Origin: Klebsormidium nitens
Lineage: Eukaryota > Plantae > Klebsormidiophyceae
Reading direction: 5' to 3'
Length of the DNA: 64,000 bases
Assembly (NCBI GenBank): GCA_000708835.1
Contig: DF237148.1
Span: 1 to 64,000, forward strand
Shown: in pieces, positions 1 through 40,532 of the stretch
How the letters are laid out: each line of letters starts with the position of its first letter
How positions within the stretch are numbered: position 1 is the stretch's first letter
Position numbers and translations under genes: made by a program
Notes under the pieces: generated by a model
The model's input: the letters and a program-made list of their open reading frames with translations, nothing else
Database searches by the model: none
Told to the model about the DNA's origin: nothing

Positions 1-1658
1 CACACCAGAGCTATCCATCATAGAGCCGCGCGAGCAGTTCAGAGCACATTAGGTGCCAGGCCATTGGCGTTGTCAGGTTTCGTAGGCCGTGGGGATCTCT
101 TCACGGTCGCTGCTTCCGGTCGTATCATTGACATTTGAGGTGCTGTGGCACTCACTTTCTGACATTGAGTTGGCTTGGCCAACGCACTGCTTTGTATATA
201 CATATTCATATTGCTAGGGCAAGAGTTGGTTGCCGGTTACCTCTGTACCGGTAGTCTGACTTGCGGTACCCCGGACTGTTAACGGCAGGACAGCCCAAAC
301 CCACTTTGAAACCAATCGCAGACTATGCGCGCGTGCCGTCCACCTGAAGTTTGTTGAGAAAATCTTCTTGCGCGATTTTGATTGGTCCGCTAAACCTGGA
401 GTCATCCGGGACATGTGCTTTATGCCACCATTCTAATAGTAACCGTCCTGGCGTCCGTCCACACGGCGCTGCTCTTGCCCAGCTGTATCCTGCTGTACGG
501 CGAGTAACTGTAGCCTGCTGCCTGCTGCAATCTGCACCTGATATGACATCACTGTCACAGTACAGAAGGTCCTGCACCCTGCCTAAAACTCAAGAAAGGG
601 ACTCGAGTGCAGACTGGTCGATGTTTCTTCCCTGCATCGCACCATATTGTAGAGATTGCTGAAGAGGCACTGCTGGAGGAGGCACAGCCGCACAGTAGGT
701 AGACCGTACGTAGCTGAGCCTGATGTCATCAGTCCTGAGTTTGTAGGTGGGTGAACCAGTTACTCTTTTGCCACCAGAGCGCTTCCTCTTCCTTTGCTGC
801 TTGTTGAGCTGCAGTAGCCTGAGTAGGTGTCTGCTATATCGCACGAGCTACCACCACTGCACCACTGCTCTTGAATTGGAGTAAGAGTAGATTAGTGGTG
901 GGAATCTAAATTGTGCTTTAGTGCCAGGAGCAAGCGTTTTGCGGAATGCTTTGAGTAGGCTGTAGTACTGTAAGCTGCAAGGAGCTCATTGCGTTTGCAT
1001 GATTTTGCATGGTTGACAGATTTTAATCGTGCGACTTGGCATCATTGTGCATAATCTGGTTTTCGAATATAAGACTTCAATGCAGCAAGAAATAAGTCGG
1101 GAGGTGACATCGGTTAGCCTGGTTGTTTAGTTCTAGCAAGATTGCAGACATACACCATTCTGCATCGTTTGAGCCAGTGCCTGGCGCAAACCGCATCTGC
1201 ATTCACTCAAGCTGCAGATGGTCCCTGCTCCTGCGGGCTATGAACGTTCTGGTACTTCAGTAGATTTCGACTTACAGACGTTGGCCCGCAATGGTGAGTT
1301 GGCTGGTACGCCATTCCCTACAGTCTCAAGCTTTATTGCATGTCGGCCGTGCAAAACCCTTTGAAAGCTGGCACACCATTCACATGAACTGCCTGGAAGC
1401 GGTAACCAGCATTGTTGAGATCCTCATAGCTGAACAGCCTACGAGGGCCATGCTAAATGGCAATTGCAGTAGGGATTCCAAGAGCTTTTGCCGTCAATCT
1501 GGGCATCTACCAGCACGGCTGCACCGTGACAGCATCAGCAGGTATAGGTGGTGGCGTCTAAAGTGGCATTGCCAGTAACCGTGGGATGCAAGCTAATTCT
1601 CAAAAACAAGCGCGCCACTATTCAACACTGAATGTGACAGTCCTTTCTTTGTCTGCAG

Positions 1659-1749
1659 GAGAGCACGTTGAAAAGGCCGCGCACGGCAAACACGCTCATT
1701 GCCACATTGAGCGCCGCAATCTTGCTCAGTGTGACGGTGCAGGCAGAAG
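1659..1749 (+). CDS. Candidate signal-peptide exon of the giant gene
   Basis: ttctttgtctgcag|...|gtaggt. Reads ESTLKRPRTANTLIATLSAAILLSVTVQAE (basic, hydrophobic, VQA). Its phase-1 end matches the phase-1 start of exon 2116-2160. A possible upstream ATG mini-exon is 1240-1251 (MNVL|gtact), speculative. Confidence 0.4.
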
Positions 1750-2115
1750 GTAGGTTGACGAGATGACAAGTTTGGACGTGCATATAGGACCTTCTTCATG
1801 TCTTTTAAAATGCGGGGAACACTTTTGGAAGTGACTCTGGCTCTGGATGCAGATGGGAATCTTTGTCCGGCCTATGTCGATTTGCACCAAGTGGCATTCG
1901 AGCTTTTTTTACTCCGGTGCCGGTGCCAGTGCTGCAAATGAGTCCTTCGCCACAAATCACAAACACGCAACAGAGGCCAGGCGTGAAGAGAGATTGCGCA
2001 ACAGTATCCACAGACTTGCTAGCAAGGGGTCACAGGCACCTTAAACCGAGGCACTGACTACATTTGTAAACACTTCAATCTTTGATGGATTCGCCCGACC
2101 CTCGTGCCTTTGCAG

Positions 2116-5100
2116 CTGCTATGGAACATAGTTACTGGCCAGCAATGGGGACCTATAAAGGTGAGTCTCAACGGATACTGCTTTATTAGAGCGGTACTAG
2201 AGCACTTAATCAGTCTTGAATTTGCGCATCTTTCACAATGATAGCCTGTCACAACATTTAGATGAGAAGTTTGGATCTTCAGTTTGGCGGCAAATAAATT
2301 TGCAACCGGCTTTATACAGATGTGTTGCTTATGTACCCTGCAACTTGGCACCGCTTGGTTGTCCAGGTAGCTTAAAGAGATCAATGAAAAGTGTTCTAAG
2401 CTTCATCGGCATTCAACCGTCAGATTGGCAAGATTCTTGCGTGCAGAATCCACTCACGGTATGTTACGTTTTACTTCAGCGTTTGCTTGTTGAAGATACG
2501 ATTGTTTCCACCTACCTTCTGCCTCCCTGCAGGCGGAACAAACCTGACTGTCCTGCTCGAAAGCACCCTTACTGGACAGACCAGTGCCTGGTTGTACTGC
2601 CGCTTCGACTCGATCATTGTCTTCAACGTCGACTATAACGCACGCGCACCGGAGGGGCCGACTGTCACCTTCGTCGTGCCTCCATTCGTTGAAGGAAAGA
2701 AGGAAGTTGGCCTGGCCTTCAGTGTGGACGGGCTCCATTATGAGCCGTTCGGCAAGTTTGTCTATCATGGTGAGCGCAGGCGCTGACTGAATCTACTGCC
2801 TGGTTCGCTCCCTTACGCTTTCGTCTCAAATGTTTGGACGTTTCTTGCTTGAGGAGATAGCAACACTGCAAGTAGTGGTGAGGCGATCTTGTGTGTCCTC
2901 AAACCGGGTACAGCGCAGCAAGGACACCATCTGGCGGCTCTCTCAGATATCAAGCACCTCTTTCGGGACGGCCTTTCGAGCTCGGCTTTTCTTCTTCTGC
3001 GTAGAGCCCCTGATGATCTTCTTGGTGGAACCGCCTGCGGGGCCTCCGGAGGGCGGTCACAAAGTCTCCGTCCGCCTGCTCAACCCAAACCCTTTCCTCG
3101 AGCGCGTCACTGCCGCTGACGTCAGACTCTTGGCAGAACCGAAGTGCCTGTTTCAGGACGCAACAGTGCCCGGTACATATGAACCGGCCTCGGACGGCTA
3201 CCCCTGGCTGTCGGTGTCGTGCAGCGCTCCGCCAGGAGGCCTCGGGACCGTGGACCTCAGTGTATCGCTCAACGGCCAGGAATATACGAGTCTCCCTGGT
3301 ACATATGCGTATACAGCGGACACCATGCAGACGCAAGAGCAGGAAGCAGGTAAGCGAGGGTCTGAAGACTCTGAGCATTGACGTCCTGCCGGCTCACAAC
3401 ATGGCCTCGTTTGGACGGTAAAGGACCCTCCGTAGGGTTGCTTCGATCAGGATCCTACCGTGCTGATAATCCGTGTTTCTCGTCAAAAGGATTTGGCTCG
3501 AAAGTGCAGGCTTCGTAATCGGCACTCGGTGCTTGGCGGATTCGGCGTTATAATGAGCTTTCCTGATGGGCAAACGCACAAAGCTCCCTTCTCTTCGCAA
3601 TTTGTAAAGCCTTCGATATTGTTGCAGTTGCAACGAACGAGTTGACTGCCAGTCCCTCCATTGACGAAGCAGCTTGCGTGCGTACGTTCCGCGTGGGTCT
3701 CCTCATCTTCTGTTGACCCTCCAATGTGCACGTTTTGAACGAATACTGGAGGGGCCTGGGCACAACACAGGTGACAGTAGCTGCTTCACCTTCACATCCC
3801 TCGTTTTGCCTTCTTTGCAGATGTCGAACCTGGTTACATCACCACCGAGACGACAGAAGCGGCTTCATCCTTCTATTACTACACTGAAAAAAAAAGTAAA
3901 CTTGCTCCCCACGCCTGCTTTTTATTCTTGTATTATCCTTTGAGATATGAGATGCCGAGCAACGCCGGGCGATTATAAAACATAAGCTGCTTTTTTTCCG
4001 CTCGCTATTATGGAGACGAGGACGTCAGGTTTGAACCTTCTAAACCAATCTTCCAAACTCAGCATTCCTAGCTCCTCAAAGCAGCGCGTTGAATATTCAG
4101 AGAGCGAGCCTACAACTTAAAGTTGATGCCGAATGCTATGTGGAAGTAACTACAATCTCTTGAGGCGCTGTGAACAGAATTATACATAGCCGCTTTGCTG
4201 TGAAGAGACTTGATCAATTTTATGCTGCCTCTGCTTAAGTCACTGCGTTAATGCGCGTTTCTGTTCAGGGCATGTAGAAAATGAAGCCCTCTGCTTGTCC
4301 GAAAATTGAAGCTGGAGATCTGCAATCTCGACCTAATCCAAAACTCAATGCTTGCTTTCGCCCGGCAATCTTCACTCGTAGGGGCGCTTGGGGTCTTGCT
4401 TAAGCGTTGGCTTAGCTGTTTGATATGGCTTACACTGGTCATACGGCTGGGTCACCGTTGAAACGTCTCTGTCTTCGTTGGAGGGTATGGAGAAAGAGCA
4501 AGCGGCATCGTTTTTCGTCCGGATGCCAGATGACGCCGTCGCGCAACTTTTGAGACTATCATTCCTGCTGTGACGTCACTGGCTTCACGGACCTGCTGAC
4601 GACATTCTGGCCCTCTCATACTCTGTGACCTCCAAGCTCATTCTCAATGCTTCCTTTGTCTTGCAGCGGCTCAGGACCCCGTACTTTTGTCGGCGTGCAT
4701 GATGTCGATCTATCCGAGAATAGGGCCTGGCGCCACGTCCTCCGCTGTCTCCGTCTCCCTTGGAGTAACGTTACCAGTCACGGGCGCCAAACGGCCGCTG
4801 TGCCGGTTCGGAACAAACGTCACGACCGGGTATTACAACGTGGGAACGAAAATTGGCCTCGGCAATGGCACGTTTGTTTACTGCCCGGCGCCCACCATGC
4901 CTCTGGGAGGCACGGTGCCTCTTTCCATCAGCATGGACGGAACGACTTTCACGGGCGCGGCGAGCTTTACGTACTACAGTGAGTCTAACACCTCTCTATC
5001 TTCCGGTGATTGTTGAAAGCGTTGATAGTCTATGCGATGCTTGTGGTGATGCGGAAAATTGTCATGTGCAGCCAAATCTACGCCAGCTTTGCGTTGCTGC

Positions 5101-6690
5101 CCGTGACTTGATTTAAACTTTGGCGGAACCACCCGGTCGTGCCACGTCAGCTTAATTCTGCCTACAGCATCTAAGCACTTCGCGAGGGCTTCGTTGGGCT
5201 TGCTTCCTTGTTGAGCGAAAGCGGTGACCCCGGATCCGTCTTGGATCTGGATAAGTTTGCCATTTTTGTCATGTCAAATGAAATTAGACAGTCCGACCTG
5301 AATATTGCTTTTTCTTTTCCTTATTTACAGCACCCTTAACCGGCTTCAACGTCTCCAATCTCCCCCCGGTCATGAACCAGCTGGGCCCCTTCGAAGCCGT
5401 CATCCAACTCTCTGCCTCCCCCTTCCCCGCCGCCTTCACCAGCTTCGACCAGGTCGCCTTTACCGCCTGGTGCTGGTTAGACGGCATTCAGACCCCGGCC
5501 GCGTACTTCCCACCGGACNNNNNNNNNNNNNNNNNNNNNNNNNNNNNNNNNNNNNNNNNNNNNNNNNNNNNNNNNNNNNNNNNNNNNNNNNNNNNNNNNN
5601 NNNNNNNNNNNNNNNNNNNNNNNNNNNNNNNNNNNNNNNNNNNNNNNNNNNNNNNNNNNNNNNNNNNNNNNNNNNNNNNNNNNNNNNNNNNNNNNNNNNN
5701 NNNNNNNNNNNNNNNNNNNNNNNNNNNNNNNNNNNNNNNNNNNNNNNNNNNNNNNNNNNNNNNNNNNNNNNNNNNNNNNNNNNNNNNNNNNNNNNNNNNN
5801 NNNNNNNNNNNNNNNNNNNNNNNNNNNNNNNNNNNNNNNNNNNNNNNNNNNNNNNNNNNNNNNNNNNNNNNNNNNNNNNNNNNNNNNNNNNNNNNNNNNN
5901 NNNNNNNNNNNNNNNNNNNNNNNNNNNNNNNNNNNNNNNNNNNNNNNNNNNNNNNNNNNNNNNNNNNNNNNNNNNNNNNNNNNNNNNNNNNNNNNNNNNN
6001 NNNNNNNNNNNNNNNNNNNNNNNNNNNNNNNNNNNNNNNNNNNNNNNNNNNNNNNNNNNNNNNNNNNNNNNNNNNNNNNNNNNNNNNNNNNNNNNNNNNN
6101 NNNNNNNNNNNNNNNNNNNNNNNNNNNNNNNNNNNNNNNNNNNNNNNNNNNNNNNNNNNNNNNNNNNNNNNNNNNNNNNNNNNNNNNNNNNNNNNNNNNN
6201 NNNNNNNNNNNNNNNNNNNNNNNNNNNNNNNNNNNNNNNNNNNNNNNNNNNNNNNNNNNNNNNNNNNNNNNNNNNNNNNNNNNNNNNNNNNNNNNNNNNN
6301 NNNNNNNNNNNNNNNNNNNNNNNNNNNNNNNNNNNNNNNNNNNNNNNNNNNNNNNGAAGGAGGATGAGGATGAGAGAAAAGTTGAAACTTCACATTCTTC
6401 CATACCTCCGCTGAGAATAATGAACAGAATGATGAAAATCCGGATGAAAATGAGGCGCTTCATCCCGATCTAGAGTGAATTCAGCCAAGAGAAGGATGAA
6501 GTGAGGAGGATGAGGATGAGGCGCTAAAGCTGTAATACTTACAACTCCATTACGACTTCGTGCACCGGACGCCACCTACCCGTTCCCCAGCGTCCGCTGC
6601 TTCATGAACGCGACCACATGGGGCTAGAAACAGCTCCTCTTCAGCTTGGACGGGTCGTACTCTTTCAGAGTACCGGCGCCGCTCTCGTTC
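2116..6690 (+). CDS. Four IPT/TIG domains (exons 2116-2160, 2533-2769, 3005-3349, 4667-4978, 5331-5518+6571 onward)
   Basis: YWPAMGTYKGGTNLTV...YCRF...AFSVDG; VEPPAGPPEGGHKVSV...PKCLF...SVSLNGQEY; SIYPRIGP...PLCRFG...SISMDG; fourth domain ...VRCF...LLFSLDG. These match the IPT pattern P..G...GGT.v.v / C.F / S.dG..y. Confidence 0.75.
3628..3895 (+). CDS. Two possible small phase-1/phase-1 exons (3628-3681, 3821-3895) in the intron between IPT2 and IPT3
   Basis: gttgcag|..|gtacgt and ttctttgcag|..|gtaaac. Both are open and frame-preserving (VATNELTASPSIDEAACV; VEPGYITTETTEAASSFYYYTEKK). They are not needed for the model. Confidence 0.25.
5511..6570. mobile_element. ~1 kb insertion (mostly hidden in the N gap) splitting an exon, flanked by the 8-bp direct repeat CACCGGAC
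   Basis: CACCGGAC occurs at 5511-5518 and 6563-6570. Removing 5519-6570 gives continuous TPAAYFPPD-ATYPFPSVRCF. There is no AG at the 3' edge, so it is not an intron. The visible part 6356-6562 is D/E-rich decayed coding-like sequence. Confidence 0.55.
5519..6355. other. Assembly gap (N run)
   Basis: Run of N. Confidence 1.
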
Positions 6691-9600
6691 GTCAAACCGA
6701 CCGACAATACGTCCGCCCCGGTCCCGGTCCCCAGCCCCGACGTGGGGGTCCCCCTCTTCGGCCTCGGGAACGTGCTCTCGCTCGGTCCCCCGCTCAAACG
6801 GCCGACGCCCGTGCCAGCTGACACCCTGTGCCTGAAGTATAACGCGGATCCCTCCGCTACCAACGCCAACCTAACGAGTGTCGGTATAGACCAAGGGGTC
6901 TCGTTATCGCCCGCGTTTTCCGCCAGCACAACCATTTACAACGTAATTGGCAACGACCCAAAGGCCGTCACTTTCGCTTTCTCACTGACCCCAGCAGGCC
7001 CCGGGGCAAACGTGTCGGTAGACCTCCTCAGCCCCGTCTCGGTGTCAGGGTCCCCGATCGTGACTGGACTTTTCCGCGGGCCTCTAGTTCCGGGAACGAA
7101 CATCTTCACCGTTCGGGTGACCGGCCCCAACGGCTTCACGCAAATGACGTACTACATCTACGTCACGTGCCAGGCCACGGCCCTAGTCACGAGCCTCACC
7201 GCCGACGCGGCCGCGCTCGCGCCCGCCTTCGCGGAGGGCGTCTACAGCTACGCGCTCTCCGTGAACTCGTCAGTGCAGCAGATTGTTTTGACGGCGGCGA
7301 GCAACGGAACCCGGTATACGCTCGTATACAACGCCGCCGTATACGACCCTGCCCAGCCGTTGGTCGTATATCCTTCCAACACGGCTCTCACAGTCGGCGT
7401 AACAGCTGTTCTTGGCGTGCCGTCCAACCTGCTGTGCCGGAACTACACGACGGCGGCAAACACAAGCAAGCCGCTCTTCCCGGGGGGGGGTATGAACATC
7501 TCGATGGCCAAGCTTCCCGGGGGTTACGGGTTCTTAACCAGTCCGTCAGGGGCGCTAACCGCGACACTCGCTCTCGACTGCTTCGGGACCAAAGTGTTTT
7601 ATGTGTGGGTCACGCAAACGGACAAAACCGCGGTTGTGTACACCCTTACCGTGAAGCGGGCCATGCCCGCTGATCTGACCCCCGCCCTTTCCATCCTGGA
7701 CGTCATTTCGGGGGGCACTGATCCCACGCCGCCGTACAACATTAGCAACCCCGCTGATACGGTGTACTCCATTACCGCGACGTCAATCTATCAGCAACTA
7801 ATGCTGGGAGCCCAGCCGGCAGCTCCTGTTGCTGCCGTTCGGACCGTACCGGACCAGGTGAGGAAACGTGCTCTTTCTAGCCTTTTCTTGTTCTTACCCT
7901 TCTACCTTGGTCCATCAATCAGCACAACTCAGAAACTCAAGCTGTTCAGATTGCTTTCGAAAGATTCGACATGTTGGCAAGCAGCTCAATTGTGCGTTTC
8001 TACGAGTTACCACCTTCCCTTGGTAAAGGATCCCAATCTATGGAGGTAAAGCGGATCGGGTGGGAGTGTCAGACGTCGTTGCTTCACACGCTGAAACATC
8101 CATTCGATCATTGAACTGAGAACTTAGCAAGTGGAACATTGCACATGTTGCTCACCATCACCGGGTATCAACTGGAAAGAGGATCAGGATGTGGACTTTA
8201 CCTGCATCGGACATTTCTTGTATATTATTCTGTTCGTCAAAAGGCCGAACCTTTGGGTCGAAGACTTCTTCAACGGGCATGTAGGCAACCTGGAGAGCCT
8301 TGGAAGAGCCCGCAACTCGAAGCGCTGAGCAAAGTCTCAGCTAGCCTTTCCTTGTGACACGTTTTGCAGGTGAAGCTCGACTACGGCCACAACACCTTCA
8401 GCCTCGCCCTCACCGGCCTGGATTACGTCAGCAAGGCCAGCTACTCCGTCGACGCGTTCGTCCCGTCCGGCGTGCTCGCGCAGATGTTCGTCCAGTACCT
8501 CATCTTCAGCGTCTTCATGGGACCCATACTCCCTGGGCAAACCGCGCCAAGCTCCAACTTCTTCGTCGTAAACACGGGGATGTCTCCCCAGTTCCAGAGC
8601 ACCGGCCCCTTCAATTACTCTGTCGGCGACGGGCAGATAGACTCCAGCCAGATTTACGTCCTGCTAACCACTTGGGAGTGGGACGCGACAGCGACTACCA
8701 CCGTTTCCTGCTGGAGCGGCTGCAGCGGCCCTCTGTACGTAACCGACCAGACTTGGCTAACCCGCGTCTCTAGTTCCATCAGCATCCCCGCGACCAGCAC
8801 GCTAAACTCAACCCAGTGGGCCCAACGGATGAGCGTGTGGGTTCTGGGCCTCGCGTACGGGGTTAACCAGGTCCAGGTTAACGTGACCGGCAGCCTTGGT
8901 GACTCCAGCACGTACTACGTCAGCATAAACCGCGACAGCCTCGTGGCGGATGACGCCACGCTCACGCTGGTCAACGTCTCCGCTCCAAACGGGACCCAGG
9001 CGTTCGGTGGGGCGCAGTTCAGCCCGCTGACGCAAGCATACAACGTCAGCTTGCCGAAACCGGTTCCCAGCCTTCTCTTCAGCGTTCTGACCAAGAACCC
9101 GGCAGCCACAGTCTCTATGACTGTTGACTCGATTCCCGTAGCTCCCAGCCAAATCAGTGCGTCTTACAGCCCCCCCGCTCCGACCACTCAGACCCTTACG
9201 AACAATTTGCAGCCGCTTCCCTCTCAAACGGTCCCCCCCGCTACATATTGGCAGTGGGGGATCCCTTTCGGGAACGTCACCGCGGGGGTTGTGAGACGCG
9301 TCGACTTTACAGTCACTTGCGGAAGCGCGCAGGCTGTGTATTCTTACTGGCTGTCGGTTGCCATTGCACATGATGCTTCGTTGAGCAGTGTGGGCATTTA
9401 CTACGTGGAAGGGACGCAGGTTCCGATCCCGTTGTCGTCTTTCCAGCTGAACGGCAACCAGCAGGTACGTGTTCCAAGCGCAAAAGTCGATCCTCGGCGG
9501 AAACAGTTGACTTGTCCAGAGCGGGAGCGTATGAAGCAGGTCTGATTGTACCCGCTTTTCAAATCTCGAGTTGCTCGTTTCGAGGACCTTCAGACCTTTG

Positions 9601-11482
9601 TCATCTTTGTCGATGTACTGTTCAACGGTTATTCCGAGCATTTTGAACTGAGATGGACAGACACTGACATATGAAGAAGTTGTATCTCAGTATGTTTGCA
9701 TCTCAGACCTTCTCCAAGCTTTTGTTTCTTGCTTGACTCCATTATGCGTTTCTTATGAAGAAAATGAAGCCCTCTTGCAGAGCGCTGAAACAAGTTGGTC
9801 TCTATTAAGGGTGCTGTCGCTTTGTAATATTGAATACAATCACAGCTAATCGTACTGATCGAGACAGCTCTCAAGCAGAGAACTCAACTCAACCAGTCCC
9901 GCGACACTACTTCCTCAGCTTTTCTCTTCGAAACCTAAAAATCATGTATTTCCTCGTTCCGTCAGACACGAGCAGGTTCGCGCACAGCAAGCAGTACAAT
10001 TGCCATGCAGTATTCGCCGTGTCTTCGCGCAGACACCTGTTTGATTGCAAGACCGCGCCTCCGACTTGGTTCAAAGTACCGCCTCCTGATCGGCTCCCTC
10101 TCTTTCCTGGAGCTTTTCTTTCGTGACGACGGATCTTACTATGCTATCACCACAATGAGATTAATCGTTCTGACTTGGACTCATACCATCTGCAGATGTA
10201 CACCGCATCTGTGCCCAAAGCGGTTCAAGCCCTCGGCCTGTACGCAATCCCAACCAACCCGGCCTCTTCGATCTCCCTCAACACATCCGCCCCTTCCGCA
10301 ACCGTCATCCAGCGCCCGGTTCTCAATGCGCCCGGCTCCTGGGTTAGCCCTACCGGTTTCTCTCTCGGGCCCGTCAAAACGGACAGCCTGTTCAGCCTGG
10401 GAGTCACCGCGCCAGACGGCGTCTCTAAGCAAGTCTACCTGCTTGACGTCGTGCGCTTGGCCGGAACCGACGCAACCCTGCGGTCATTAAACGCCACGGT
10501 TAACGGGACGGTTATCCAACTCGACCTCCGGGCGGACCCGGTGCAAGTCCCCGGGCTGACCGCCGGCACAAGCTCCGCCCGCTTTGCCTGGGCGGCGACA
10601 GACTCGGCCGCGGCTTCCGCGTACTCCCTCGACGGAACGACGGTCCTCAGCGGAACGTCGGTAACCCTGTCCCTGTCCCCCGGGACTAACAGCTTCAAGG
10701 TGCGTGTGGTTTCAGAAGATGGGGCGGCCACGGGCTGGTACAGCGTAAACGCTATGGTGCCCATAACCGCCGGGGCAACTCTGGCGACCATGGCAGCCAA
10801 TCCGGGGGTGCTTGTCCCAAACTTTTCTCCGAGTGTCGCCCAATACTCCCTGCGCCTCCCGAGCAACGTCGCCATCTTCGTGCTCAACGCTTCCGCGGCT
10901 GATCGAGCGGTCCAAATATCCTCGACCGGTACCAACCCGCCCGGCCAGTCGTCCCTCAACTTCCCCGGGGAGATGCGGTACAAAGCTGACGTGGGCGGCG
11001 TTATTTTGGGCGTCAACCCCTCCATGAGTGGACCAGCGAGGAAGTATACGGTGACCGTCACTGCCCTGAAAGACTACGAAATGCTGACGTACCTGGACTT
11101 TATGGGCTCCCAAATGGGGATAAAATACCAAGCCCCCCCAAGTAACCCGTCGTTCCCCAATCCGGGGGGCTTGGCGGCGACCGCAGGGCAGCAGGTGCAG
11201 TTCCAGGTCGCCGCAAACTGCTCCCGCTACCAGCGCAACTTCGGGGGCGATTCGGCGCTCTGCGAAGGGATGGGCACACTTGTGGTGCAGCTCATATTGG
11301 GCCCCGCATTTGGAGTTTTTGCTTCCATTGTCACAAACGCGACGTGCACAGTTGCCAAGGGGACGCTTTCTTATACGCCGGTGGCTGCGGGGTTGTATGT
11401 GGTGCAAGCGGCTTTGGCGACCTGTCAGCAGCTCGCGGGGTATTGCGACTCGAAGACGTACAAGCTTCTGTATCTGCCGCAG
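6691..11482 (+). CDS. About 7 cadherin-like beta-sandwich repeats (exons ..7857, 8370-9464, 10196-11482)
   Basis: Repeated motif nA.L.sl......l.P.F......Y.v.v: ATNANLTSVGIDQGVSLSPAFSASTTIYNV; ALAPAFAEGVYSYALSVNSSVQQIVLTA; DDATLTLVNV...FSPLTQAYNVSLP; GATLATMAANPGVLVPNFSPSVAQYSLRLP. Confidence 0.7.
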
Positions 11483-11953
11483 GTGAGTTGATGAGATTCA
11501 CCTGTTGTGATTGTCCAGTTTGCATTCAGTTGCCAATTTCAGGCCTTTTTTCGGATCCAACGTACTTAGCCCGAGTGTTCACATCATCGGAGAGATTAAC
11601 AAAGAAATTGTTAGGATGCTCCATTGTGGGGGCCCATCCCGTTGCCACCTAGCCTGGATCGACTCGTCCTTCCAGAAGCAAGACCGTTCTTCGTTCTGAG
11701 GCTTTGATTTCATTCGCTCCTTCACTTACAAACAGAATTTGAGGGCTCGATGATACTTGGCCCGCCTTCGCGAAATTGATGACAGGATCACCTGCAGACC
11801 ATGATGCTTCCTCACTCTGCAAAGATCTTTGATCTGGCCTTTGACAACCTTAGCACTTTGCCTTACTGCTGGCACTTCCTTCTGCGCAAAGATTGAAATT
11901 CTCACCTAAAAGTAACAGCGCTCTTCCAAATCCTTACATTCTTCGATGTGCAG

Positions 11954-29900: not shown

Positions 29901-30205
29901 ATTGCAGGTCGTTGTTACGCCGGGACCAGTTTCCAGCAACACGACCTCGGCTTTCGGCGACGGCCTCACCGTGGGGACCGCGGGGCAGGTCGCCTCGTTC
30001 GTGGTGACGGCCCGGGATGCCGCCGGCAATATCTTCAGCAGTCTGCCGGCCGTGTCTTTCTCCCCTCCAAACATGGTAGACAGCAGCAGCGTGCGGGTCG
30101 TCTTCACGGCTTGTGCGCCGGATGCGACCAGTTGCCTCGCAGCAGTCACCTACAAGCCCGCGATGTGGGGAAGCGTCACGATTACCGTCGCGTCTGGGAC
30201 TACTG
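11954..30205 (+). CDS. About 30 tandem filamin/ABP280-type Ig-like repeats
   Basis: About 30 copies of a F.v..rD.yGN core, counted by eye (PRDTYGN, PRDKAGN, LVDAFGN, LRDAYGN, PADALGN, ARDQYGN, PQDAYGN, AYDALGN, ARDAAGN...), with DngDGTY and aG.Y.l.v partner motifs at ~100-aa spacing. Confidence 0.85.
17065..17205. repeat. Intronic direct repeat, two ~57-bp copies, period 84
   Basis: ccagct(a/t)catctgattcat...cgcccccagaaa(a/g)gcttcagtagagcacaa starting at 17065 and 17149. Confidence 0.85.
18780..19041. repeat. Tandem duplication (~125-137 bp) of an intron 3' end
   Basis: agacggctgtgcaac...gcacgcggcttggctgtc.ggcaatgaaagcttcc.catcctccct occurs twice. Each unit ends in a pyrimidine tract plus CAG (18904 and the used acceptor at 19041). 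Confidence 0.85.
19262..19318. repeat. Perfect 19-bp inverted repeat with a 19-nt spacer
   Basis: gattgtccaattgactgcg (19262-19280) and cgcagtcaattggacaatc (19300-19318). Confidence 0.95.
28124..28596 (+). other. Non-canonical GC-AG intron
   Basis: CAG|gcgagt donor and ccgcag|GCA acceptor. The phase-0 join gives PSTVQ|ASLVDKQDGTY. The nearby GT (gtaatc) would give the wrong phase. Confidence 0.65.
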
Positions 30206-30787
30206 GTGAGCCCTTGAGATGACTTTACTCCTTGAGAAAGTTCTTTTGTAAACGTAGGCGTTTTTAGGCGAACTTCTGACGCTTGTACAAGCTTTTAGAA
30301 AACAACGTTCACTGAATTCCACTGGTTTGCTGCTCTTAGAAAAGTTTGATCAATCATGCAGACTCACCGCAGATTGCAAAGTTGTGTAAAAGGTGTCTTC
30401 GATATAAGTTGCAGTGATTGTGTTCCTGTTTTCAGACCTGATTTAGGCTTCGTTTGACCTGATACCTTAGTCTTTTGACTTCATTCCTTAAAATAGCTGA
30501 ACACAGGGCCGGGGGGCGGCCTATAGCGGTGTTTCTCTGACCGATTGTTTTGCAAGCGGCCTGTGAAACGCCCTCTCGTTCTTCGGGTCAAACAACTCAC
30601 TCCCAGAGAACTCTGAACGTGTAACCACCAGCTCTTCACGGATTGCCTTGCACCAAAGTATATCCTCAAGTATATTCCCTCAGCACCGCATGATTCATTC
30701 AACGATTTCTTGCACGAGAAGAACCACCACCCCCCGCCTCCGACGCTTCTGCTTCTGCTGACGTCACGAACTTCCTGTCTTCCGCAG

Positions 30788-33700
30788 TGACCGGCCGCTA
30801 CGCCCCGGTCATCGCGCCAGCGCCCGCGCCGCAGCTCCTCTCCGCCAAACTCTCAAACCTGCTCACCACGCTGAGCGTCCAGTTCGACCAGCCCACTAAC
30901 CTGGGCGGTTTGCAGCTGGTTAAGCCCCGGAACCAGACCTGCCAGAAGCTGCTCGACCCGAGCACCGTAGCCAAGCTCGGCCAAGCCGGGCGCTTCTTCT
31001 GCGACTGGCCGGACAGTGATTCGCTGCAAATCACCCTCGGTTTCAATGCGACGATCCTACCGGTAGGAAGTCTTGCGCCGGACTCCATCGTTCTGTTACC
31101 AAACGTGGTCGGTAACGCGGCGTCCAACTCGTACAACGCGTCCGGTTCCGTTCCGCTGAGCGCGCCGGACGCGCCGCCGGTTCCGATGGTCAGTCTGACG
31201 GCGCCCAATGCGATCGGGCCCTGTGACTCGGTCGTTCTGTCGGTTGCCGGGTCGACCGGGGGAGGGGGCCGGCCCCTGCAGTACGGCTACTTTGTTCAGG
31301 TAAGATGTTCAAGCTCTAGTGCTCTAAATCTCTGCTCTTAATCCACTTGAACGATTCCATATGCCCATTTTAACAAACAGTCGAATGGAAGGAAAGCTCC
31401 AGCGCGTGACAATTTCCCCTTCGCGCTCATTACTGGGGAAGACGATCTCTCGAACTTCCAGGTTAGAGATCGTAAAAGGACCATTATTTGGGTTGAGGGT
31501 GATCACGACTGGGGTTGGACACCTCGTCAGATCGGGGCTTTAACAATCAGCATCGCATGACGGCATGTAGGTACATGCCTGGGCAAGCCACAACTTCGCA
31601 GCAACCGGGATAACATCCTACATCGTGAAAACATTCTGTATAGGTTTTGAAGCAGAAACTCATACATGTTTTTCAGAAGCAATCATTGGATTTAAAGCAG
31701 GCGTTATCGATGATAGCCTAAGTCAATACCCTACCAAGCGCGTAGAGTCTGCAGAGTCTTGCTGGTTCTGTGGTTGTGGTTATGTACGCACGGATATGCA
31801 TCTCTCGTGGCACGGGACAATCTTCAACCGTTCCTTTGCTGAGAACACCTTGCTGAACATTCAAAGAGACGCTCAGGCTGAGCGACTTGCAGCACGCAGA
31901 ATGAAGCGTGGTTTCGTTACGAAAAGCTGACGGAATTTTAAGACCCGCACAGACTCACGCTTCCTTTCTTTCCATCTCTGCTTACCAAGCTCTTTGCAAC
32001 GACATTTGCAGGGGCTCAACACCGACGCGACGGCCGCGCTCACCAAAACGCTCGCGAACTACACCGCTGCGGGTTCCTACACCTCCCTTACCCTCAGCGC
32101 AACGGATTTGGTTCCCGGTAATGTTTACACTTTCACCGCCATGGCGACCAACTTCGTGGGCGTTACTAGCACACCGGTCGCCATTACGATCGCCAAGTCC
32201 GACAAACAGATGCCTTACGTCATCGTACCGGGATCCGGCCCCGAGAAACGCATCACGGGTAACGCGAATTACATCATCACAGCGTTCGCGGTCGGGGGAG
32301 TGCCCGGGAAATTTGCTTACGTCAACGGGCAGTGCGTGCCGGCGTTGAACTACACCAACCTGCCGATGAACTACACGTGGCAGCAGATGACGGGGCCCAT
32401 CATCAACGTCAGCAGCTTACCTGCAGCTTACCAGAGCTCGCTCCGGTCGTCGTATCTGAAGATCCCCGGGAATGTGCTGAAAGTGGGCGTCGATTACGAA
32501 TGCATGGTGAGGAAAGCGGGTCCAAATGAAAGCTTCACTTCTGTTTCTTTGGGTTCTTCCCCCTTTCGTTCTCATTTCATTCTTTTGAAATGCGCAAGAT
32601 TTGGTGTCGTTCAAGAATCAGTGAGACCTTTTCAAGGGAAGATATGAACGTCAGCACAAAGTAGCGTCGTAAGCAATTCGCCACAGTAAAGACTCTGTCC
32701 CATAAAAGCTTCATTACTCCCCGATCCAACATACCCATTTGGCGACCTAATTTCTCAATTGGTTCAAGCAGGGTCCATGTAAGTTCTACGCCTCTTGCTT
32801 CACATTTCCCAATCGCAAAGCCAGAGGTCCTCCCAAAGGAACAGTCGTTAACTATTATAAAGTCACACCTTGGCGCCCTTGAAGTTCCGTGCATGAATGA
32901 AGTTCACATCATTCCTTATCATTTTTTTCTAAACGTGTAACCGAAGATAAGTCGGCTACCGCAGAATATAAATACGAGATGGAAGACTGAACGCCGAAAA
33001 GAATGCGAAACTAAGGACGAACCATGTTTAAGAACACGCCGGGGCAGGATCCATCGACCTCTTCCGCTCCCGCAGAATCAGCTTCGAAAAAAACTTATGA
33101 TTAGCGCAAGTTCTAATGAGGAAATCTTCCCTGGGACAGGTGCGGTAGTAACATGTTGGTTAGAATGAACATGTATGCGGAGCCGGTAAACCTCGGGGTC
33201 ACAAGCCTTTCTTTGTTGCAACGTATTGAGCTCAGTTTGAGTAAACTAGAGTGTAACGATTCACGCAGGTGTCCGCCGCTCTAAACCTCGGCAAAACCTT
33301 GGGCCCCGCGGCGACCGGCCGCGTCACCCTCTCCCTCGAGCCGCAGCCGCTCGTGGTTTACATCCTCAGCGGAGATCGTACCGGAAACTACAACGCTAAC
33401 CTAACCATAACGGCGTCGGCAGCCGATCCGGACAGCATAGTGGACGGAAACGGAATTCCGTACCCGTTCCAGTACGCGTGGGCGTGCGACAAGCGGCTGA
33501 GCGGCGCGGCCGCGGCCGCGCTCTACCAGTCCGACGCGACGAACAACTACGGGCAGTTCCTGATCTTTCCGGCGAAGTCGCTGCCTTCGTCGAACGACAG
33601 CTACACCTTTACTGTCACCGTGAGTGATCACCCTTTTGAGGGTAGTGGCAGATACTTGGATTTACAATCATGCGAAATGCTTGAGGAAAAGACGGGCTTT

Positions 33701-35355
33701 GGACCTCGCTCTTTCCATTTGCTCTTTTCTTTCACGAGTCTGAGAATTGATGTGAAACCGCTTTCGAGAAAGTGGCCAACTCACGGCAACAGCTATCAAG
33801 GGTCTTCTTGTCTGGCAGTCCCTCATGTCGCTTTTCCAATAATAAGTTGCATCTTCATCTCTCGGTTTGTCTCCTCCTATGTCGACTCAGAATTTTCTAA
33901 GGAATTCTGCAGGTTGCGAGAGCAAGAGAAAAGAACCGTGCTTGATAGAAAGTGGCAACACACAGCCAAAGAAAATCAAGCGGCCACTAACCTGTAGTCC
34001 GTGTGTCTTGGCACTTAACCGAGTCAAAAAGTGCAATATCCTTACAGGTCTCGGAAGAGCCACTCTCCCCGGCCGGCTTCGAGTCGCCACCTCCAGCAGA
34101 ATACAATCTAGCTGCCCAGTAGTCTGCAAACCCCTTCTCCTTGGAACTTAAGCATACCCCTCTCCTTGACACTTAATCAAGCCAAAACTTTCAATAACCC
34201 TACAGGTGTCGAAAGAACCCCTCTCCACCGGGCGGCTCCGCGTCCCCGCCTCCGCCAAAATCACCATGGCCACTTCCCGCACGATCGCCATGGCGATCAA
34301 CGTTACCGGGTCAAGCATAACCGGGGGCGTCGCGTCTTCTCGCAAACTCGATTTCACAGCCTGGTCAGACGTTCCGGGCACTATTTACTCCTGGGCGCTC
34401 AAGAATAACGGCACCGGTCAAACGTACCCGTTCACGGTTAGCGGTGACACGAGATCGATGACCATTTTCCCGGGCACTCTGCCCGGGGGACGCGTGTACC
34501 GGGTTACGCTAACCGCGGTGGACCCGACCGGGTTTCTTTCCGGGCAGACGTCCAGGGACTTTACGGTGTACAACGTGCCCAGCGGCGGGACCATGGCCGT
34601 GGATCAGATCAACGTGACTCCGAACGTGAGTGGTCGTCACAGACTGGACGCTGACTAGTTTGTCTTTCGACTTCCTTCCTGCCCAGATTCCGTATTCTGC
34701 GACGTGGGGAGGCTTCTCGGCTGACGCGTTTGCGATGCACGCTCTTTTCAGACTGTTGATGCAGTCAAAAGTACGACATGAAACAACGGGTTGACCGCCG
34801 GGTTTCTTTTACAAAAATGTAGCCAGGATGGTAATTGGGTCGGACCGCGGTTCGACGCGTCTTGCAGGTTTATTCTGAACAAGTCCTCAGCACGGAGGTC
34901 TTCAGCTTGACGACTCGTACTGTAACCGCCTCTCCTTTCCTTTCCGTTTGGGGATCAAAATGGCCGGCTCTGTGAAACTGGTGCTTCAGTTTGGCTTTGG
35001 ATGTGTCAATTTCGAGGAGTCTAAAGCGCGCTTGCAACGGTTTTTAATAGTGGGTTCCGAAAAGCAACACTCACCCGTTCTATATTTTTGCCGGTCAGAA
35101 ATTCAACCCCGGCTTCAAGTACTACTGGAGGTTGACCGCGAGCGACTGGTCAAAGAGCCCCGAAGCCCCCAACGGGATGCTCCAGTACCAATTCCGGTAC
35201 TCAATAGAAGGGGGATATGAGTATATTGTTAGCACGGGGGCGAGTACTGTCGCCACGGTTAATCCGTTTGGACCGGGCACGTACCGGTTCATTTTGTACG
35301 TCAGCAACCCGGGAGCGCCGGCGTCGGCCCCGGGCGACCAGCCCAACGGTGCCAG
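30788..35355 (+). CDS. PKD/REJ-like module with its upstream Cys-containing segment
   Basis: PQLLSAKLSN...SVQFDQPTNLGG...C...LG...CDW; LTLSATDLVPGNVYTFT..ATNFVG; PLVVYILSGDR...LTITASAADPD...YAWAC; IFPGTLPGGRVYRVTLT; PSGGTMAV...LTASDW...LQYQF. Confidence 0.7.
34012..34252 (+). repeat. Decayed duplicate of an intron-exon boundary (period 158)
   Basis: 34012-34092 resembles 34170-34252: cacttaa...tacag|GT.TCG.AAGA.CC.CTCTCC..GG.CGGCT.CG.GTC. Confidence 0.75.
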
Positions 35356-38068
35356 GTTAGTGAGCATAACCAAGTTGACCGGGTGTGCTTACCGTGGTTG
35401 TTTTCTGATGGTAGGATTCAAATGCTTGCAGTAGCGCGTCAAGGGATTGCGGCTAGAGGATAAGCAAGGGAGCGACGGATGGTGATGGAAGAGAGTAAAA
35501 GACGTCTTATAGTGAAAAGATCGTGCCATGTTGTGACCTTTGTAAGTAGCTTAGACACTTCTACTCGAGGGATAGGATCAGGTGCGGGTGATTGAGTTGC
35601 CACAAAAGCTTACTGCGAGGGAAAGTAAGATGGCGTGGAATTTTGGTGCACCAGTTCTGACGCCCTTGAAAGCAGTTTCGGTGCCAAAGCACTCCAGATA
35701 CGACATTGCCGTCAGGCGAGTCTCAACATGAGCGTTCCAACTCTTGTCTGCAACCCTGCGCATCGAAAGCCTGGAAGTATTTGCATTTTGTAATACGGTC
35801 AAGAGCAGTCGTTCAGATCGCAGCTGACGGAGACCAATGCTATTCGACCAAACGACTCTTCTTGAGCATGCAGATTCGACGGTGCGACCAAGTACGTTTC
35901 GTCCAAGCGGCGCGCCCTTTTGTCTTTCGACGAGGACGAGTCCCCCGGGCCAATTTTTGAGGGGCGGTCCCTGCTTCAGTCTTCCCCGGTGAACGTTACC
36001 GTCGCAATCGCGGATTATGAGGACACTTTCCTGCCGGCTGCATACCAGACGGCAGACTATTTCGCCGTGCTGACGTGGGCGATCAGGTGGGGTGCCACGT
36101 ATGCACCGCCCGATCCGCTCCAACTCGGCTGCGGCGTCGGGAACGATTTGATGCGCGGCGCGAAGGCGGACGTCCTCAAAATGATCGACGTCCTGGACCA
36201 GTCCGCACCACCGGCCTTCTCCCCCGGTACGTACCGGAGGGCTGTCCTCAAAAGAATGCTTCGAGTACTTTACAATTCGATGTGTCTTGAAGTTCAATTG
36301 ACCGCTTAGCTGCCGCAGAGGGTCCTCAAACTCGATGCTTTTCAGAACAATCTCTTGAATGAAAATCAAGGAACGAAAAGTTGAGTGAAAGTGCCGCTTT
36401 TATGTCTGCGAAGACTTATTCCGGCAACATTCAGAGGCAAGTGCGAAACACAGGAGAACATTTAATTAAGCCAAGCGTTGAATTGCCGACTCTGCCTCCG
36501 GCTCTGTTTCTCGTCTCTACGGTTCCGCGACCTTCTGGCCGACCTTTCTGTCATTGATAACTTGGAAGACGTGAGACTTTAAAGTGGACACAAGAAGCGG
36601 GGACGTGCTGGAGAACAAAAGTTAATGTTGAGGATCGGATTAACGTTTCTCTACAAGTGCTCACGACGTTTCCCGTATCTCTCCCTCAGGTCTGGACAGC
36701 GGCGGCGGCGCGATCATCGCCAACCAGCACGCGTGCGCGCTCGCGTCGATCCTCGCGCCCGCGGACGAAGTCGCGCTTTCCCTCCTTCCGGCGACCAGCG
36801 ACAACTCCACCCTCTCTTCCACGGTCGCCGAAACGCAGCCCGCCATCCAGAGCGCCATCGTTACCTTCCTGCCCAAGCTCCAGCTCATCGCCCAATACGG
36901 GCTTGCCACGTCACCCTGCGCCGGGGACAGCGGCTCGTGCGACAATTACGAGTGCTTCGCCCGCGCGGCCGACGCGCTCCTGAACGCGGCCGCGCGGCAT
37001 TGCGCGGCCGCGTCGCTGCCGCAGCTGTGGTGGTTTGACGCGGCCGCTTTCGCGCCCGTGCTGCTCGCCAGGGTTTACGGGAACGACCCCTCGGTTTCGA
37101 CACCTGGAGTGCCCACCAATTTTGCGGGGCAGACGTTCGAAGGAACGGCAATCCAGGCCGGCGGAGATGGCGGTGCCGTTGCGGCGACGGCCGGCAGCTT
37201 CGGGTTCAGCGTGCCCGTTTCCGAAACGGGGGTGACGGCGTATGCCATAGCGTATGCCGACGGCGTCTCCTTTGCAAATGCGCCGGTCGTCATTGAGGGA
37301 GCCGTGAGCACCGCGGCGCTATTTCTTGTCGACAGCAATGGTGAGCTGTGCTTGATTCCTCTGAGTTTGATTCGTTCTTGTCTTGTTTGAGAGCTTAGCA
37401 AGAGCGTTGTCAAGTGGGCTTCATTTTCGAGACGGGGCTTCGAGGCTGAGCCGGTGTTCTTCGTAGCTGTTTTTGCTGCCGCTTTATGAGCATGGTACTT
37501 GATTAAACAGGCAACGTTTGCCGCCTGATACAGACACATGCTGTGTACTTAGCTTGCCGCTGTCGTTCCCTGTTCGGAAACCTGGCCGGCAATCTGGTGT
37601 TCCGCGGAAACGCGAAAAAACTTGCGAGACAACCCAAAAGTAAATTTTCAAAAGTTTGATTGCTTCAGTAGATCGATCTACTGCCTTTGTGATATAGAGA
37701 CACACATGATAACTAAACAAAATAACCACGACAAGCCTCCAAGTTTCCGCCGATCAATCACAGCAAAAGTGCTCTTGTTAGGTCAGCCGTCCTTTTCAGA
37801 GGATGCCTATACAATTCAAAAGTAGAGGGACCAACTTCTGGGCTAAATCAAATGCTCGTTTTGTTTCGACTTGTGATGAGTTACTAACAAAGCCGCCAAG
37901 GCCTGACTTCGTCTCGCTTCCTCAAAGAAACGTAAACGGCTGCAGTTAGCCCATGTGGTAATTTTTCTGTTCCAGTCCTCCGTTCTCTGTTCGACCGTGA
38001 ACTCGTCTGTCACTGAGTAACTTTCCTTCCAACAGAAACTGACATCTTAGTGGACTTCTGTCTCCCAG

Positions 38069-39771
38069 GAACCTACACCGCTGGCGCCCCGGCCACGATC
38101 ACATACGCCAAGCTGCCCGCCCTTCCGACCGGTCTGGGATACGCTATCGACGTGTACCAGGCGACCGGTTGCGACCTCTGGGCTTTCCCGGCGGACCCCA
38201 CCAGCAACGAGTACACCACCTGCGTCTGGTCTGCCGCCGCAACCAACGTTTCCATTTCCGTTGACGCTACCGGAACCGGAACCGCAACGGTTGCCGCCTG
38301 GAATGGAATCTTCGTCCTGCACACAGTCCCAGTCCCCAGCTTGGTCAGCTTTGCAACGGCGACCGTTGCGCGGCCCGATCCCAAAACCGCGCCAATCCTC
38401 ATTGTAAAGATCCCCGGGGCAACAGCAGTCACTATTTCCGCTTCCGTTGTGGGCGTTACTCCGGCCGGAGCCTCGGCGACCGATTCCCTCACCGGGGTCG
38501 CCGTCTTCTACCGGGGCGCCTCCCAGCCGGTACCGGTGACTGTTCCCCCGGTCGCAGTGGTCGCCGTCTTCTTCACCCAGGGCGCCTCCACAGGAGCGTT
38601 CTTTCCGTTCGCGGGGAACATCACATTCAAGGGGATCCCCCCGCCGCCCGCCGGCGAGGCCTACATCTATGACGTGTACCACGTCAGCGGGTGCGCGACC
38701 GCCATGCCGCCGTCAGCGTTTGAGAACGCGTACGCCGGGTGCGTGTGGACGTCCGCTGCGGAGCGGGCCCGGGTCCCGTATGACGCCCAAGCTGCGTCAG
38801 CAACCATCGCCCCGACGCAGCGGCATTGGAACGGCGTCTTTGTGCTGTACTCCATTCCGGCCGCCGCGTTGCCCCCGGCGCCTTCCCCACCTCCCCCGGT
38901 CATCACCGACGCCATGACTGTTGACCCGGCCGCTAACCCGGTCGTAACCCGGGCGGTCGGCGAGAGTCTAACCTTCAGCTTTGCGGCGGCTGGTGCGGCG
39001 CCTATTGAGGCGACCGCGGCGAGCTTCCCAAGCATCGACCAGGTGCCCATCTCTTACAACCTCCGCCCGGCAGCGCCGGTCGTCGGCGCGGTCGCGCTTT
39101 TCCTCACGCAGGGCGGCAGCGCCTTCGAGCCCCCGTCCGGCCAAATTGCGTTCGGAAACGTCCCCGCTCTAGTTCCGGCCACGCGGCGCGCGCTCCTAAG
39201 CGCAAGCGTCCAGTACGTGGTAGACGTGTACACGCCAACCCGGTGCAATCCGACCGGTCCTCCGACCGACTTTGCTGCCTTCTTCGGCTGTACCTGGGCG
39301 GTGGATCGAGACCTCCCGGTCACTTACAACGCCTCCGTGGGCGCCGCAACTTATGCCCCCAACCCCGACCACTGGAACGGACTCTATCTCCTTCACACCG
39401 CTGCCGTCGAAAGCCCCGCGAGTCCGCCGACTACGCCAGTTCCAACGACCGCACCCCCCCCACAAATCGCGAGCCCGCCACCCCCGAAAGAGGGGCAGGT
39501 TGCGACGGGGGGCACGAACAGAGTCGCTATCGGGCTCGGGCTTGGGGTTGGCGCGGCGGGGGCTTTGGTCCTCGCGGCGTCGGGTGCGTTTGTGACTCTT
39601 CAGCGCCGGAAGGTGGCCGCGCACCGGAGAAAGGCGCGCGCGGCGGCGGCGGCCCGGAGCGTGCAGATGGCGGAAGCGAGCCAGAGTGGAGATGGAGGAG
39701 CGCCGGACGAGCAGGGCGCGGCGGCCGGGACGAGCGTGGAAGGTTCTCAGGCTGAGATTGAAGGCACGTGA
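38069..39771 (+). CDS. Terminal exon: three Cys/Trp repeats, Pro-rich stalk, TM helix, basic stop-transfer and short tail
   Basis: Three copies of Y..DVY....C....Y..C.W....WNG.F.L, then SPASPPTTPVPTTAPPP, then VAIGLGLGVGAAGALVLAASGAFVTL-QRRKVAAHRRKAR. Confidence 0.85.
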
Positions 39772-40473: not shown

Positions 40474-40532
40474 NNNNNNNNNNNNNNNNNNNNNNNNNNN
40501 NNNNNNNNNNNNNNNNNNNNNNNNNNNNNNNN
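40474..40532. other. Assembly gap (N run)
   Basis: Run of N. Confidence 1.

Follow-up and report, generated by a model that had tools for sequence, protein, structure and literature searches.

The first 64,000 nt of contig DF237148.1 from the alga Klebsormidium nitens (GenBank assembly GCA_000708835.1; hereafter, the window) raise the question of whether the many coding segments between 1665 and 39771 on the plus strand form one gene or several, what kind of protein they specify, and whether this copy is still intact. A sequence-only reading of the same DNA had proposed one long gene for an algal surface receptor or adhesin. We found that the whole stretch 1665–39771 (+) is one gene, which encodes a giant single-pass type I surface protein. 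The model, based on dynamic programming and on conservation with an 83% identical relative, comprises 32 phase-compatible coding exons (about 20,469 nt; about 6,820 residues), and the earlier figures of about 31 exons and 6,700 residues were approximately right.

One gene and its relatives

A HMMER search with the last exon over 1.84 billion representatives matched just three proteins, so that the C-terminal unit is nearly without detectable relatives. P0001 is a 60% identical homologue on a 62-kb JGI metagenome contig (L001), P0002 sits on a 2-kb contig and is uninformative on architecture, and P0003 was rejected as spurious, its match covering only low-complexity sequence and the membrane helix. 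With exon 21 as query, a word search yielded P0004 (83% identical, on a 68.7-kb Logan contig), P0005 (on the JGI contig), and P0006 (60% identical, from the same SRA sample as P0004); the same kind of search with exon 7 returned no orthologue, though the contig of the 83% relative carries one. The 83% contig was walked upstream (L002, L004, L005; 36 kb merged), and its blastn comparison to the window is strictly collinear, with matches confined to the predicted exons. We read this contig as the intact orthologue of a sister species. The Logan sample SRR23617307 holds both the 83% homologue (L002/L004/L005) and a 60% homologue (L003) on separate long contigs, which may be paralogues from a single Klebsormidium-like organism or come from two different organisms.

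The unity of the gene follows from this collinear, exon-only conservation, together with four further features. In the 83% relative, the 29 exons that extend to the end of its contig read as a single, stop-free open frame of 5,889 residues. Ten of the 28 filamin repeats and the first GAIN-like unit (see below) cross predicted splice junctions. The model opens with its only signal peptide and has its only strongly hydrophobic helix at the opposite, C-terminal end. Finally, a conserved GC-AG intron (28124–28596; CAG/GCGAGT), which closes exon 21 in both the window and the 83% relative, is missing in L001 (about 200–225) and L003 (about 11880–11905), where the frame reads TVQA-ALVNKQDG across the predicted junction. 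Since this intron is present in the first two sequences and absent from both 60% homologues, it appears to have been gained or lost within the gene family. A division into several independent genes (e.g., an IPT/cadherin gene, a REJ/membrane-helix gene, and at least one gene of filamin repeats between them) could be argued from the fact that no transcript joins the exons and that, in this assembly, lesions cut the reading frame into pieces. However, the relative keeps its frame unbroken over 29 exons, at least 11 junctions are straddled by domains, one junction is proven by the intron-less homologues, and the lone signal peptide and lone membrane helix lie at opposite ends, whereas extracellular Ig rods require both. 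We therefore consider separate genes hardly credible, and the single long gene of the sequence-only reading holds.

Exons were modeled using a codon-usage and splice-site dynamic programme, which gave 31 exons downstream of an assembly gap at 5519–6355, and then a heavier-penalty version with splice matrices; the calls were checked by conservation against the sister-species contig. Two small exons (2116–2160 and 3821–3895) were added from conservation and conserved splice sites. The 46–131-nt 'introns' with which the first exon model bridged lesions were rejected because their splice sites are poor and the 83% relative has single long exons there, and a splice-site-weighted model with a weak intron penalty was discarded because it produced spurious micro-exons. 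The coding sequence has a GC content at third codon positions of about 74%, introns are roughly 400–800 nt long, and the window is eukaryotic in character. The exons are as follows ('relative' denotes the 83% homologue; 'model' denotes the exon model plus conservation).

1665–1749 (+): exon 1, signal peptide; initiator ACG at 1665–1667 (ATG in the relative); donor AAG/GTAGGT
2116–2160 (+): exon 2, 45 nt; conserved with L005 2871–2915 of the relative; borders cag/.../gtgag
2533–2769 (+): exon 3, IPT-like module 1; 77.5% amino-acid identity to the relative; module alignment
3005–3349 (+): exon 4, IPT-like module 2; weak Pfam TIG match, E 0.026 here and 0.0023 in the relative
3821–3895 (+): exon 5, 75 nt; length and splice sites identical in the relative
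4667–4978 (+): exon 6, IPT-like module 3; AlphaFold2 (AF2) model with IPT/TIG structures as top Foldseek matches
5331–5518 (+): exon 7, left part, start of IPT-like module 4; CACCGGAC (5511–5518) at the gap edge; comparison to the relative
5519–6562 (no strand): insertion within exon 7, i.e., gap 5519–6355 plus 207 foreign bases; the relative is contiguous here
6571–7857 (+): exon 7, right part, with the remainder of IPT-like module 4 and cadherin-like domains after it; TAG stop in frame at 6625–6627
8370–9464 (+): exon 8, cadherin-like region; PF12733, E 1.7e-5
10196–11482 (+): exon 9, cadherin-like domains, then the first filamin-type repeat; PF12733, E 2e-16
11954–12071 (+): exon 10; model
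12575–12899 (+): exon 11; model
13493–14867 (+): exon 12, Ig repeats; in-frame TGA at 14343–14345 (GCG in the relative); a single 444-residue open reading frame (ORF) in the relative
15684–16856 (+): exon 13, filamin repeats; frame shifted by an extra base near 16716
17449–17784 (+): exon 14; model
18331–18524 (+): exon 15; model
19042–19177 (+): exon 16; model
19835–21672 (+): exon 17, filamin repeats; PF00630, E 5.8e-35; 85% amino-acid identity to the relative
22294–24309 (+): exon 18, filamin repeats; extra base near 22512 and complex 22-nt loss near 23943; a single 660-residue ORF in the relative
24873–25085 (+): exon 19; model
25502–25815 (+): exon 20; model
26238–28123 (+): exon 21, filamin repeats; base missing near 26989; followed by the GC-AG intron, where L003 and L001 read through
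28597–28847 (+): exon 22
29286–29523 (+): exon 23; acceptor uncertain by about 27 nt
29908–30205 (+): exon 24, last filamin-type repeat; PF00630, E 4.8e-5
30722–31299 (+): exon 25, no domain assigned; acceptor uncertain
32012–32506 (+): exon 26, no domain assigned
33269–33619 (+): exon 27, REJ-like, profile positions 70–182; PF02010, E 2.6e-5 (1.4e-5 in the relative, 7.8e-5 in L001)
34206–34625 (+): exon 28, REJ-like, profile positions 241–321; PF02010, E 4.1e-4 (2.8e-5 in the relative, 2.9e-3 in L001)
35099–35355 (+): exon 29
35874–36226 (+): exon 30
36690–37340 (+): exon 31; from 37085, first part of GAIN-like unit 1
38069–39771 (+): exon 32, rest of unit 1 (to 38325), unit 2 (38326–38853), unit 3 (38854–39399), SPPPP/Pro-rich stalk, membrane helix (39523–39600), 56-residue tail, and stop codon (39769–39771)

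Outside the coding exons, conservation with the 83% relative extends to two blocks upstream of exon 1 (326–436, 79% nucleotide identity; 1197–1332, 73%); they show no favoured reading frame and may be 5' untranslated exons or promoter elements. Two introns contain tandem duplications whose units are 87–90% identical (17065–17210, 62-nt units 84 nt apart; 18801–19003, 68-nt units at a spacing of 135 nt).

Domain order from signal peptide to tail

Domain searches were run exon by exon, and the joined spliced model, with its breaks left in, was used only for the repeat count and the hydropathy scan. The predicted signal peptide is present in exon 1, though its initiator is ACG. The four N-terminal IPT-like modules of the sequence-only reading were recovered: they align to each other with a common pattern (C...C...G.V.LS.S.DG..F...F.Y), the Pfam TIG profile matches weakly, and the AF2 model (predicted local distance difference test, pLDDT, 70.6) finds in Foldseek almost exclusively IPT/TIG structures (NF-kB p52, EBF1/3, CAMTA1, CSL, plexin A2, and Met; E 0.01–0.07, probability about 1). 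Cadherin-like PF12733 domains follow in exons 7, 8, and 9 (E 2e-13, 2e-5, and 2e-16), supporting the proposed domain type; the proposed number of about seven was approximate, and we count about five stretches.

The bulk of the rod consists of filamin-type Ig repeats. PF00630 matches exons 12–24 with E-values down to 6e-35, and an iterated local profile places 28 repeats between 11153 and 30192 (residues 1503–5174), with gaps that leave room for a few more, consistent with the earlier estimate of about 30. Ig_GEX2_N, Invasin_D3, and Big_1 give weaker matches on the same residues as Filamin; those of Ig_GEX2_N (PF23616) reach 38.4 bits and are always overlapped by stronger Filamin matches.

Downstream of the rod, exons 27 and 28 match collinear parts of the REJ profile PF02010 (positions 70–182, 23.4 bits; positions 241–321, 19.5 bits), each exon singly scoring just below the 25-bit cut-off. 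The pattern recurs in the 83% relative (24.4 and 23.4 bits) and in L001 (21.9 and 16.7 bits). With two consecutive exons matching in order in three homologous sequences, the predicted REJ-like region appears to be real but divergent.

The last exon contains repeats every 176–182 residues, each of which closes with H-W-N-G and then a hydrophobic strand. Three such units are followed by SPPPP/Pro-rich linkers, whose Ser-Pro4 motifs close to the membrane are extensin-like, then by a helix of 26 residues and a tail of 56 residues starting QRRKVAAHRRKAR. This agrees with the predicted three C-terminal repeats, single membrane helix, and tail of about 55 residues. It also agrees with the expected lack of a PLAT domain and a multi-helix region: a single helix with so short a tail cannot accommodate either, no PLAT was found in the last exon, and no seven-transmembrane domain (PF00002) was found after the units.

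A single unit, modeled from a six-sequence alignment, gave a confident fold (pLDDT 84.7; predicted template modelling score 0.83). Foldseek found nothing significant in the PDB (best E 0.045), and an exhaustive structural aligner ranked highest the GAIN domains of BAI3 (Z 8.1, and 8.8 on a second look with 141 residues aligned at a root-mean-square deviation of 3.6) and BAI2 (8.3) along with the ZU5 domains of ankyrin/spectrin (8.2) and ankyrin-B (8.3). Further structural matches were CD97, CELSR1, Gpr126, GPR56, GPR110, GPR97, latrophilin-3, UNC5b, and FIIND, and a shape search of the ESM-Atlas returned ADGRL4 clusters bearing the PF01825 GPS domain (TM-score 0.59–0.60). The alignments reach the end of the GAIN domain and, judging from their ranges, would place the H-W-N-G strand within a residue or two of the H-L-T/S strand of the GPS. 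We therefore read the C-terminal units as GAIN-B/ZU5-fold modules, predicted to be non-cleaving because Pfam finds no GPS and because the H and N of H-W-N-G are not conserved in P0002. Since the units fold like GAIN-B/ZU5, the REJ-like region would be followed by GAIN-like modules: a REJ-then-GAIN order is apparently kept, with the GAIN-like part triplicated and H-W-N-G where the GPS has H-L-T/S.

The GAIN assignment has to be weighed against two points. The structural match (Z about 8–9) is only moderately above that of unrelated beta-sandwiches (Z 7.2 for the GH98 C-terminal domain), and no match at the sequence level was found for these units, neither to GPS/GAIN in Pfam at E up to 10 nor in a profile search of the PDB or a feature search of the ESM-Atlas. 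The earlier statement that GPS/GAIN is absent is thus correct by sequence but not by fold. Where their contigs reach, P0001, P0004, and P0006 share the plan of filamin-Ig rod, REJ-like region, GAIN/ZU5-fold units, and membrane helix, and the locus probably belongs to a small family, of Klebsormidium type, whose members are giant surface proteins with a single membrane pass.

Lesions and the state of this copy

Compared to the 83% relative, which is free of all of them, the gene carries at least eight disabling defects in the assembly. The sequence-only reading had noted lesions, which are indeed present in the assembly but are more serious than it implied, as they include a lost start codon and an insertion within an exon. 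Apart from that insertion, they are:

1665 (+): ATG to ACG, first codon of the signal peptide
6625 (+): CAG to TAG, in-frame stop
14343 (+): TGA in place of GCG in the relative
near 16716 (+): single extra base
near 22512 (+): single extra base
near 23943 (+): 27 bases replaced by 5, net loss of 22
near 26989 (+): single base missing

The insertion coincides with the gap in exon 7. In the 83% relative, both gap flanks are directly contiguous inside exon 7. In the window, the left flank ends ...CCCACCGGAC at 5518, followed by 837 N and then by 207 bases (6356–6562) without counterpart in the relative; homology restarts at 6563 with a second CACCGGAC, i.e., an 8-bp direct duplication (5511–5518 and 6563–6570). 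The insertion totals about 1 kb, and removal of the insert with one copy of the duplication keeps the frame (exon 7 is then 1475 nt here and 1472 nt in the relative). Because an 8-bp duplication at the exact point is the trace of a transposon insertion, the inserted element is probably a transposon, and the left contig would have ended at its repeat boundary. No other copies of the 207 bases were found in the sequence examined, and a search of the whole window against Rfam returned no family. Exact splicing-out of the insertion was rejected, given that there is no GT or AG at any matching offset of the duplication. An acceptor-like AAACAG/ lies at 6633/6634, 63 nt (21 codons) beyond the insertion point and just past the TAG; splicing from 5519 to this candidate acceptor would be in frame, dropping 21 codons including the TAG. 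A second assembly gap (59 N, 40474–40532) lies about 700 nt past the stop codon of the gene, in an intergenic or 3' region.

Apart from the lesions, all exon-length differences to the 83% relative are multiples of three, and dN/dS (the ratio of nonsynonymous to synonymous substitution rates) between the two is 0.27 over eight exons. With L003 as outgroup, private amino-acid changes number 83 on the window branch and 79 on that of the relative. The gene has been under purifying selection for nearly its whole history, and this ratio, together with the unaccelerated window branch, implies that the damage is recent, or is not real or partly an assembly error. As a rough expectation, a gene that has gathered two nonsense codons, a start loss, and a handful of indels over 20 kb would carry some tens of neutral substitutions, which fits a young pseudogene and is too few to leave a signal in the rate test.

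The choice between recent damage and assembly error depends on the character of the lesions. If the gene were intact and functional, most or all of them would be draft-assembly artefacts (indels, contig-end errors, and a mis-scaffolded repeat at the gap). Consistent with this, dN/dS is low, the window branch shows no excess of amino-acid change, three lesions are single-base indels, and the insertion, the TAG, and the gap crowd one contig junction. However, the ATG-to-ACG and CAG-to-TAG changes, the three-base GCG-to-TGA patch, and the complex 22-nt replacement are atypical of assembly error and unlike homopolymer-type errors, and the 8-bp duplication, equally unlike them, fits a real insertion whose repeat ended the left contig. 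The indels, except perhaps that near 22512, are not plain homopolymer-length changes, and eight artefacts in one gene would be many. RNA data also speak for damage rather than artefact, as no RNA contig with the gene was found in the runs searched: a run search listed no run containing it, and four transcriptome-like runs mapped to 1600–7500 gave nothing, which is no proof of silence. An exact-product look-up of three lesion-bounded ORFs of the window found none on record.

We favour, with moderate confidence, a real and recently disabled paralogue, with assembly error as a possible source of some single-base frameshifts, and consider a fully intact gene unlikely. Several points weigh against disablement: the lesions are read from the assembly alone, the ones flanking the gap are at contig ends, the parts of lowest quality, and ACG is able to start translation at a low level. 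In addition, the published Klebsormidium assembly, if it is the same genome, was built from 454 and Illumina reads with Newbler (PMC4052687), a method prone to indel errors, which would favour an intact gene.

Known systems and possible function

Among animal proteins, a close parallel in layout is the polycystin-1/PKDREJ/sea-urchin REJ family, with an Ig-type array, then a REJ-like region, then membrane-adjacent GAIN-fold modules. Sea-urchin REJ1 has been described as single-pass. The algal protein differs from this family in lacking PLAT and the 11-helix, channel-like region, in having a tandem of three GAIN-B-like units where the family has a single GAIN domain, in carrying H-W-N-G instead of the H-L-T/S cleavage site (with no Pfam GPS match), and in a rod of filamin-type Ig rather than PKD repeats. 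Adhesion G-protein-coupled receptors (GPCRs; BAI3, BAI2, CD97, CELSR1, GPR56) and ZU5 proteins (ankyrin, UNC5, FIIND) provide the best structural matches of the 176-residue unit; compared to the adhesion GPCRs, the algal protein has no seven-transmembrane region, no detected helical GAIN subdomain A, no conserved cleavage residues, and at most 10% identity. Long IPT/Ig rods with a single anchor and a short tail are also found in fibrocystin (PKHD1) and in giant bacterial Ig-repeat adhesins (invasin/Big and PF12733 proteins), and the PF12733 and Invasin_D3/Big_1 profiles match parts of the algal rod. No G8 or PbH1 domain of fibrocystin matched in any exon scanned and, unlike the bacterial adhesins, the algal gene is spliced and eukaryotic, with a signal peptide and a membrane helix instead of a bacterial anchor. 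Cytoskeletal filamins share only the repeat type, as the algal N-terminus is a signal peptide with IPT-like modules and not a calponin-homology domain. Full-text literature searches gave no paper joining REJ, filamin, or GAIN with algae or Klebsormidium.

The single-pass adhesion rod of the sequence-only reading is borne out in its layout, a beta-sandwich rod with one helix; its adhesion or mechanosensing role is inferred from the architecture. In the intact form, the signal peptide would direct the protein out of the cell, where about 45–50 beta-sandwich domains (four IPT-like, cadherin-like, and about 30 filamin-type Ig) would form a rod with a length on the order of 150–200 nm. Close to the membrane would stand the REJ-like region, three GAIN-B/ZU5-fold modules without the cleavage triad, and the Ser-Pro4/Pro-rich stalk, anchored by a single helix followed by a short tail whose membrane-adjacent part includes a basic stretch. 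Such a protein would tether the plasma membrane to wall, matrix, or substrate, bearing or reporting load, and would be neither a channel nor a tethered-agonist receptor.

A role in fertilization would be an alternative to the tether. Intact members could be gamete-recognition or adhesion proteins of the GEX2 (Arabidopsis)/FUS1 (Chlamydomonas) kind, and this copy could have decayed as sex became rare or was lost in the lineage. Both GEX2 and FUS1 are single-pass type I proteins with a filamin-type Ig ectodomain that act in gamete attachment, Ig_GEX2_N matches occur in several exons, and the gene is missing from the RNA runs examined. These matches may, however, be unspecific, coinciding with the stronger Filamin ones; GEX2 and FUS1, at about 800–1,100 residues, are 6–8 times shorter and lack the IPT, cadherin-like, REJ, and GAIN-like parts; and a dN/dS of 0.27 is not the rapid evolution typical of recognition proteins. 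A gamete role is possible but not specifically supported, and we regard it as very unlikely compared to the plasma membrane tether.

We tentatively suggest that the animal-type REJ-then-GAIN module also occurs in the plant lineage, in a single-pass, triplicated, non-cleaving form on a rod of about 45 Ig-type domains, as an ancestral or independently assembled force-bearing tether between plasma membrane and wall, and that this locus is a paralogue dying with an exonic transposon insertion. The ectodomains of animal polycystins and adhesion GPCRs are characterized by REJ and GAIN modules, whose origin and role apart from cleavage are of interest here. A streptophyte alga with such proteins would be a natural test of what the modules do without a channel or seven-transmembrane partner, and could reveal a role such as cell-wall sensing or tethering in a terrestrial habitat. 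The locus is also a warning for annotation, being either a young pseudogene or badly assembled: because the gap conceals an insertion inside an exon, automatic models here would be fragments.

Beyond the gene, a neighbouring gene (42096–48778, +) has an inverted paralogous copy at 54287–60074 (−), with many arms of 70–250 nt that are 72–93% complementary, and a further partial direct copy is present at the window end (62069–64000).

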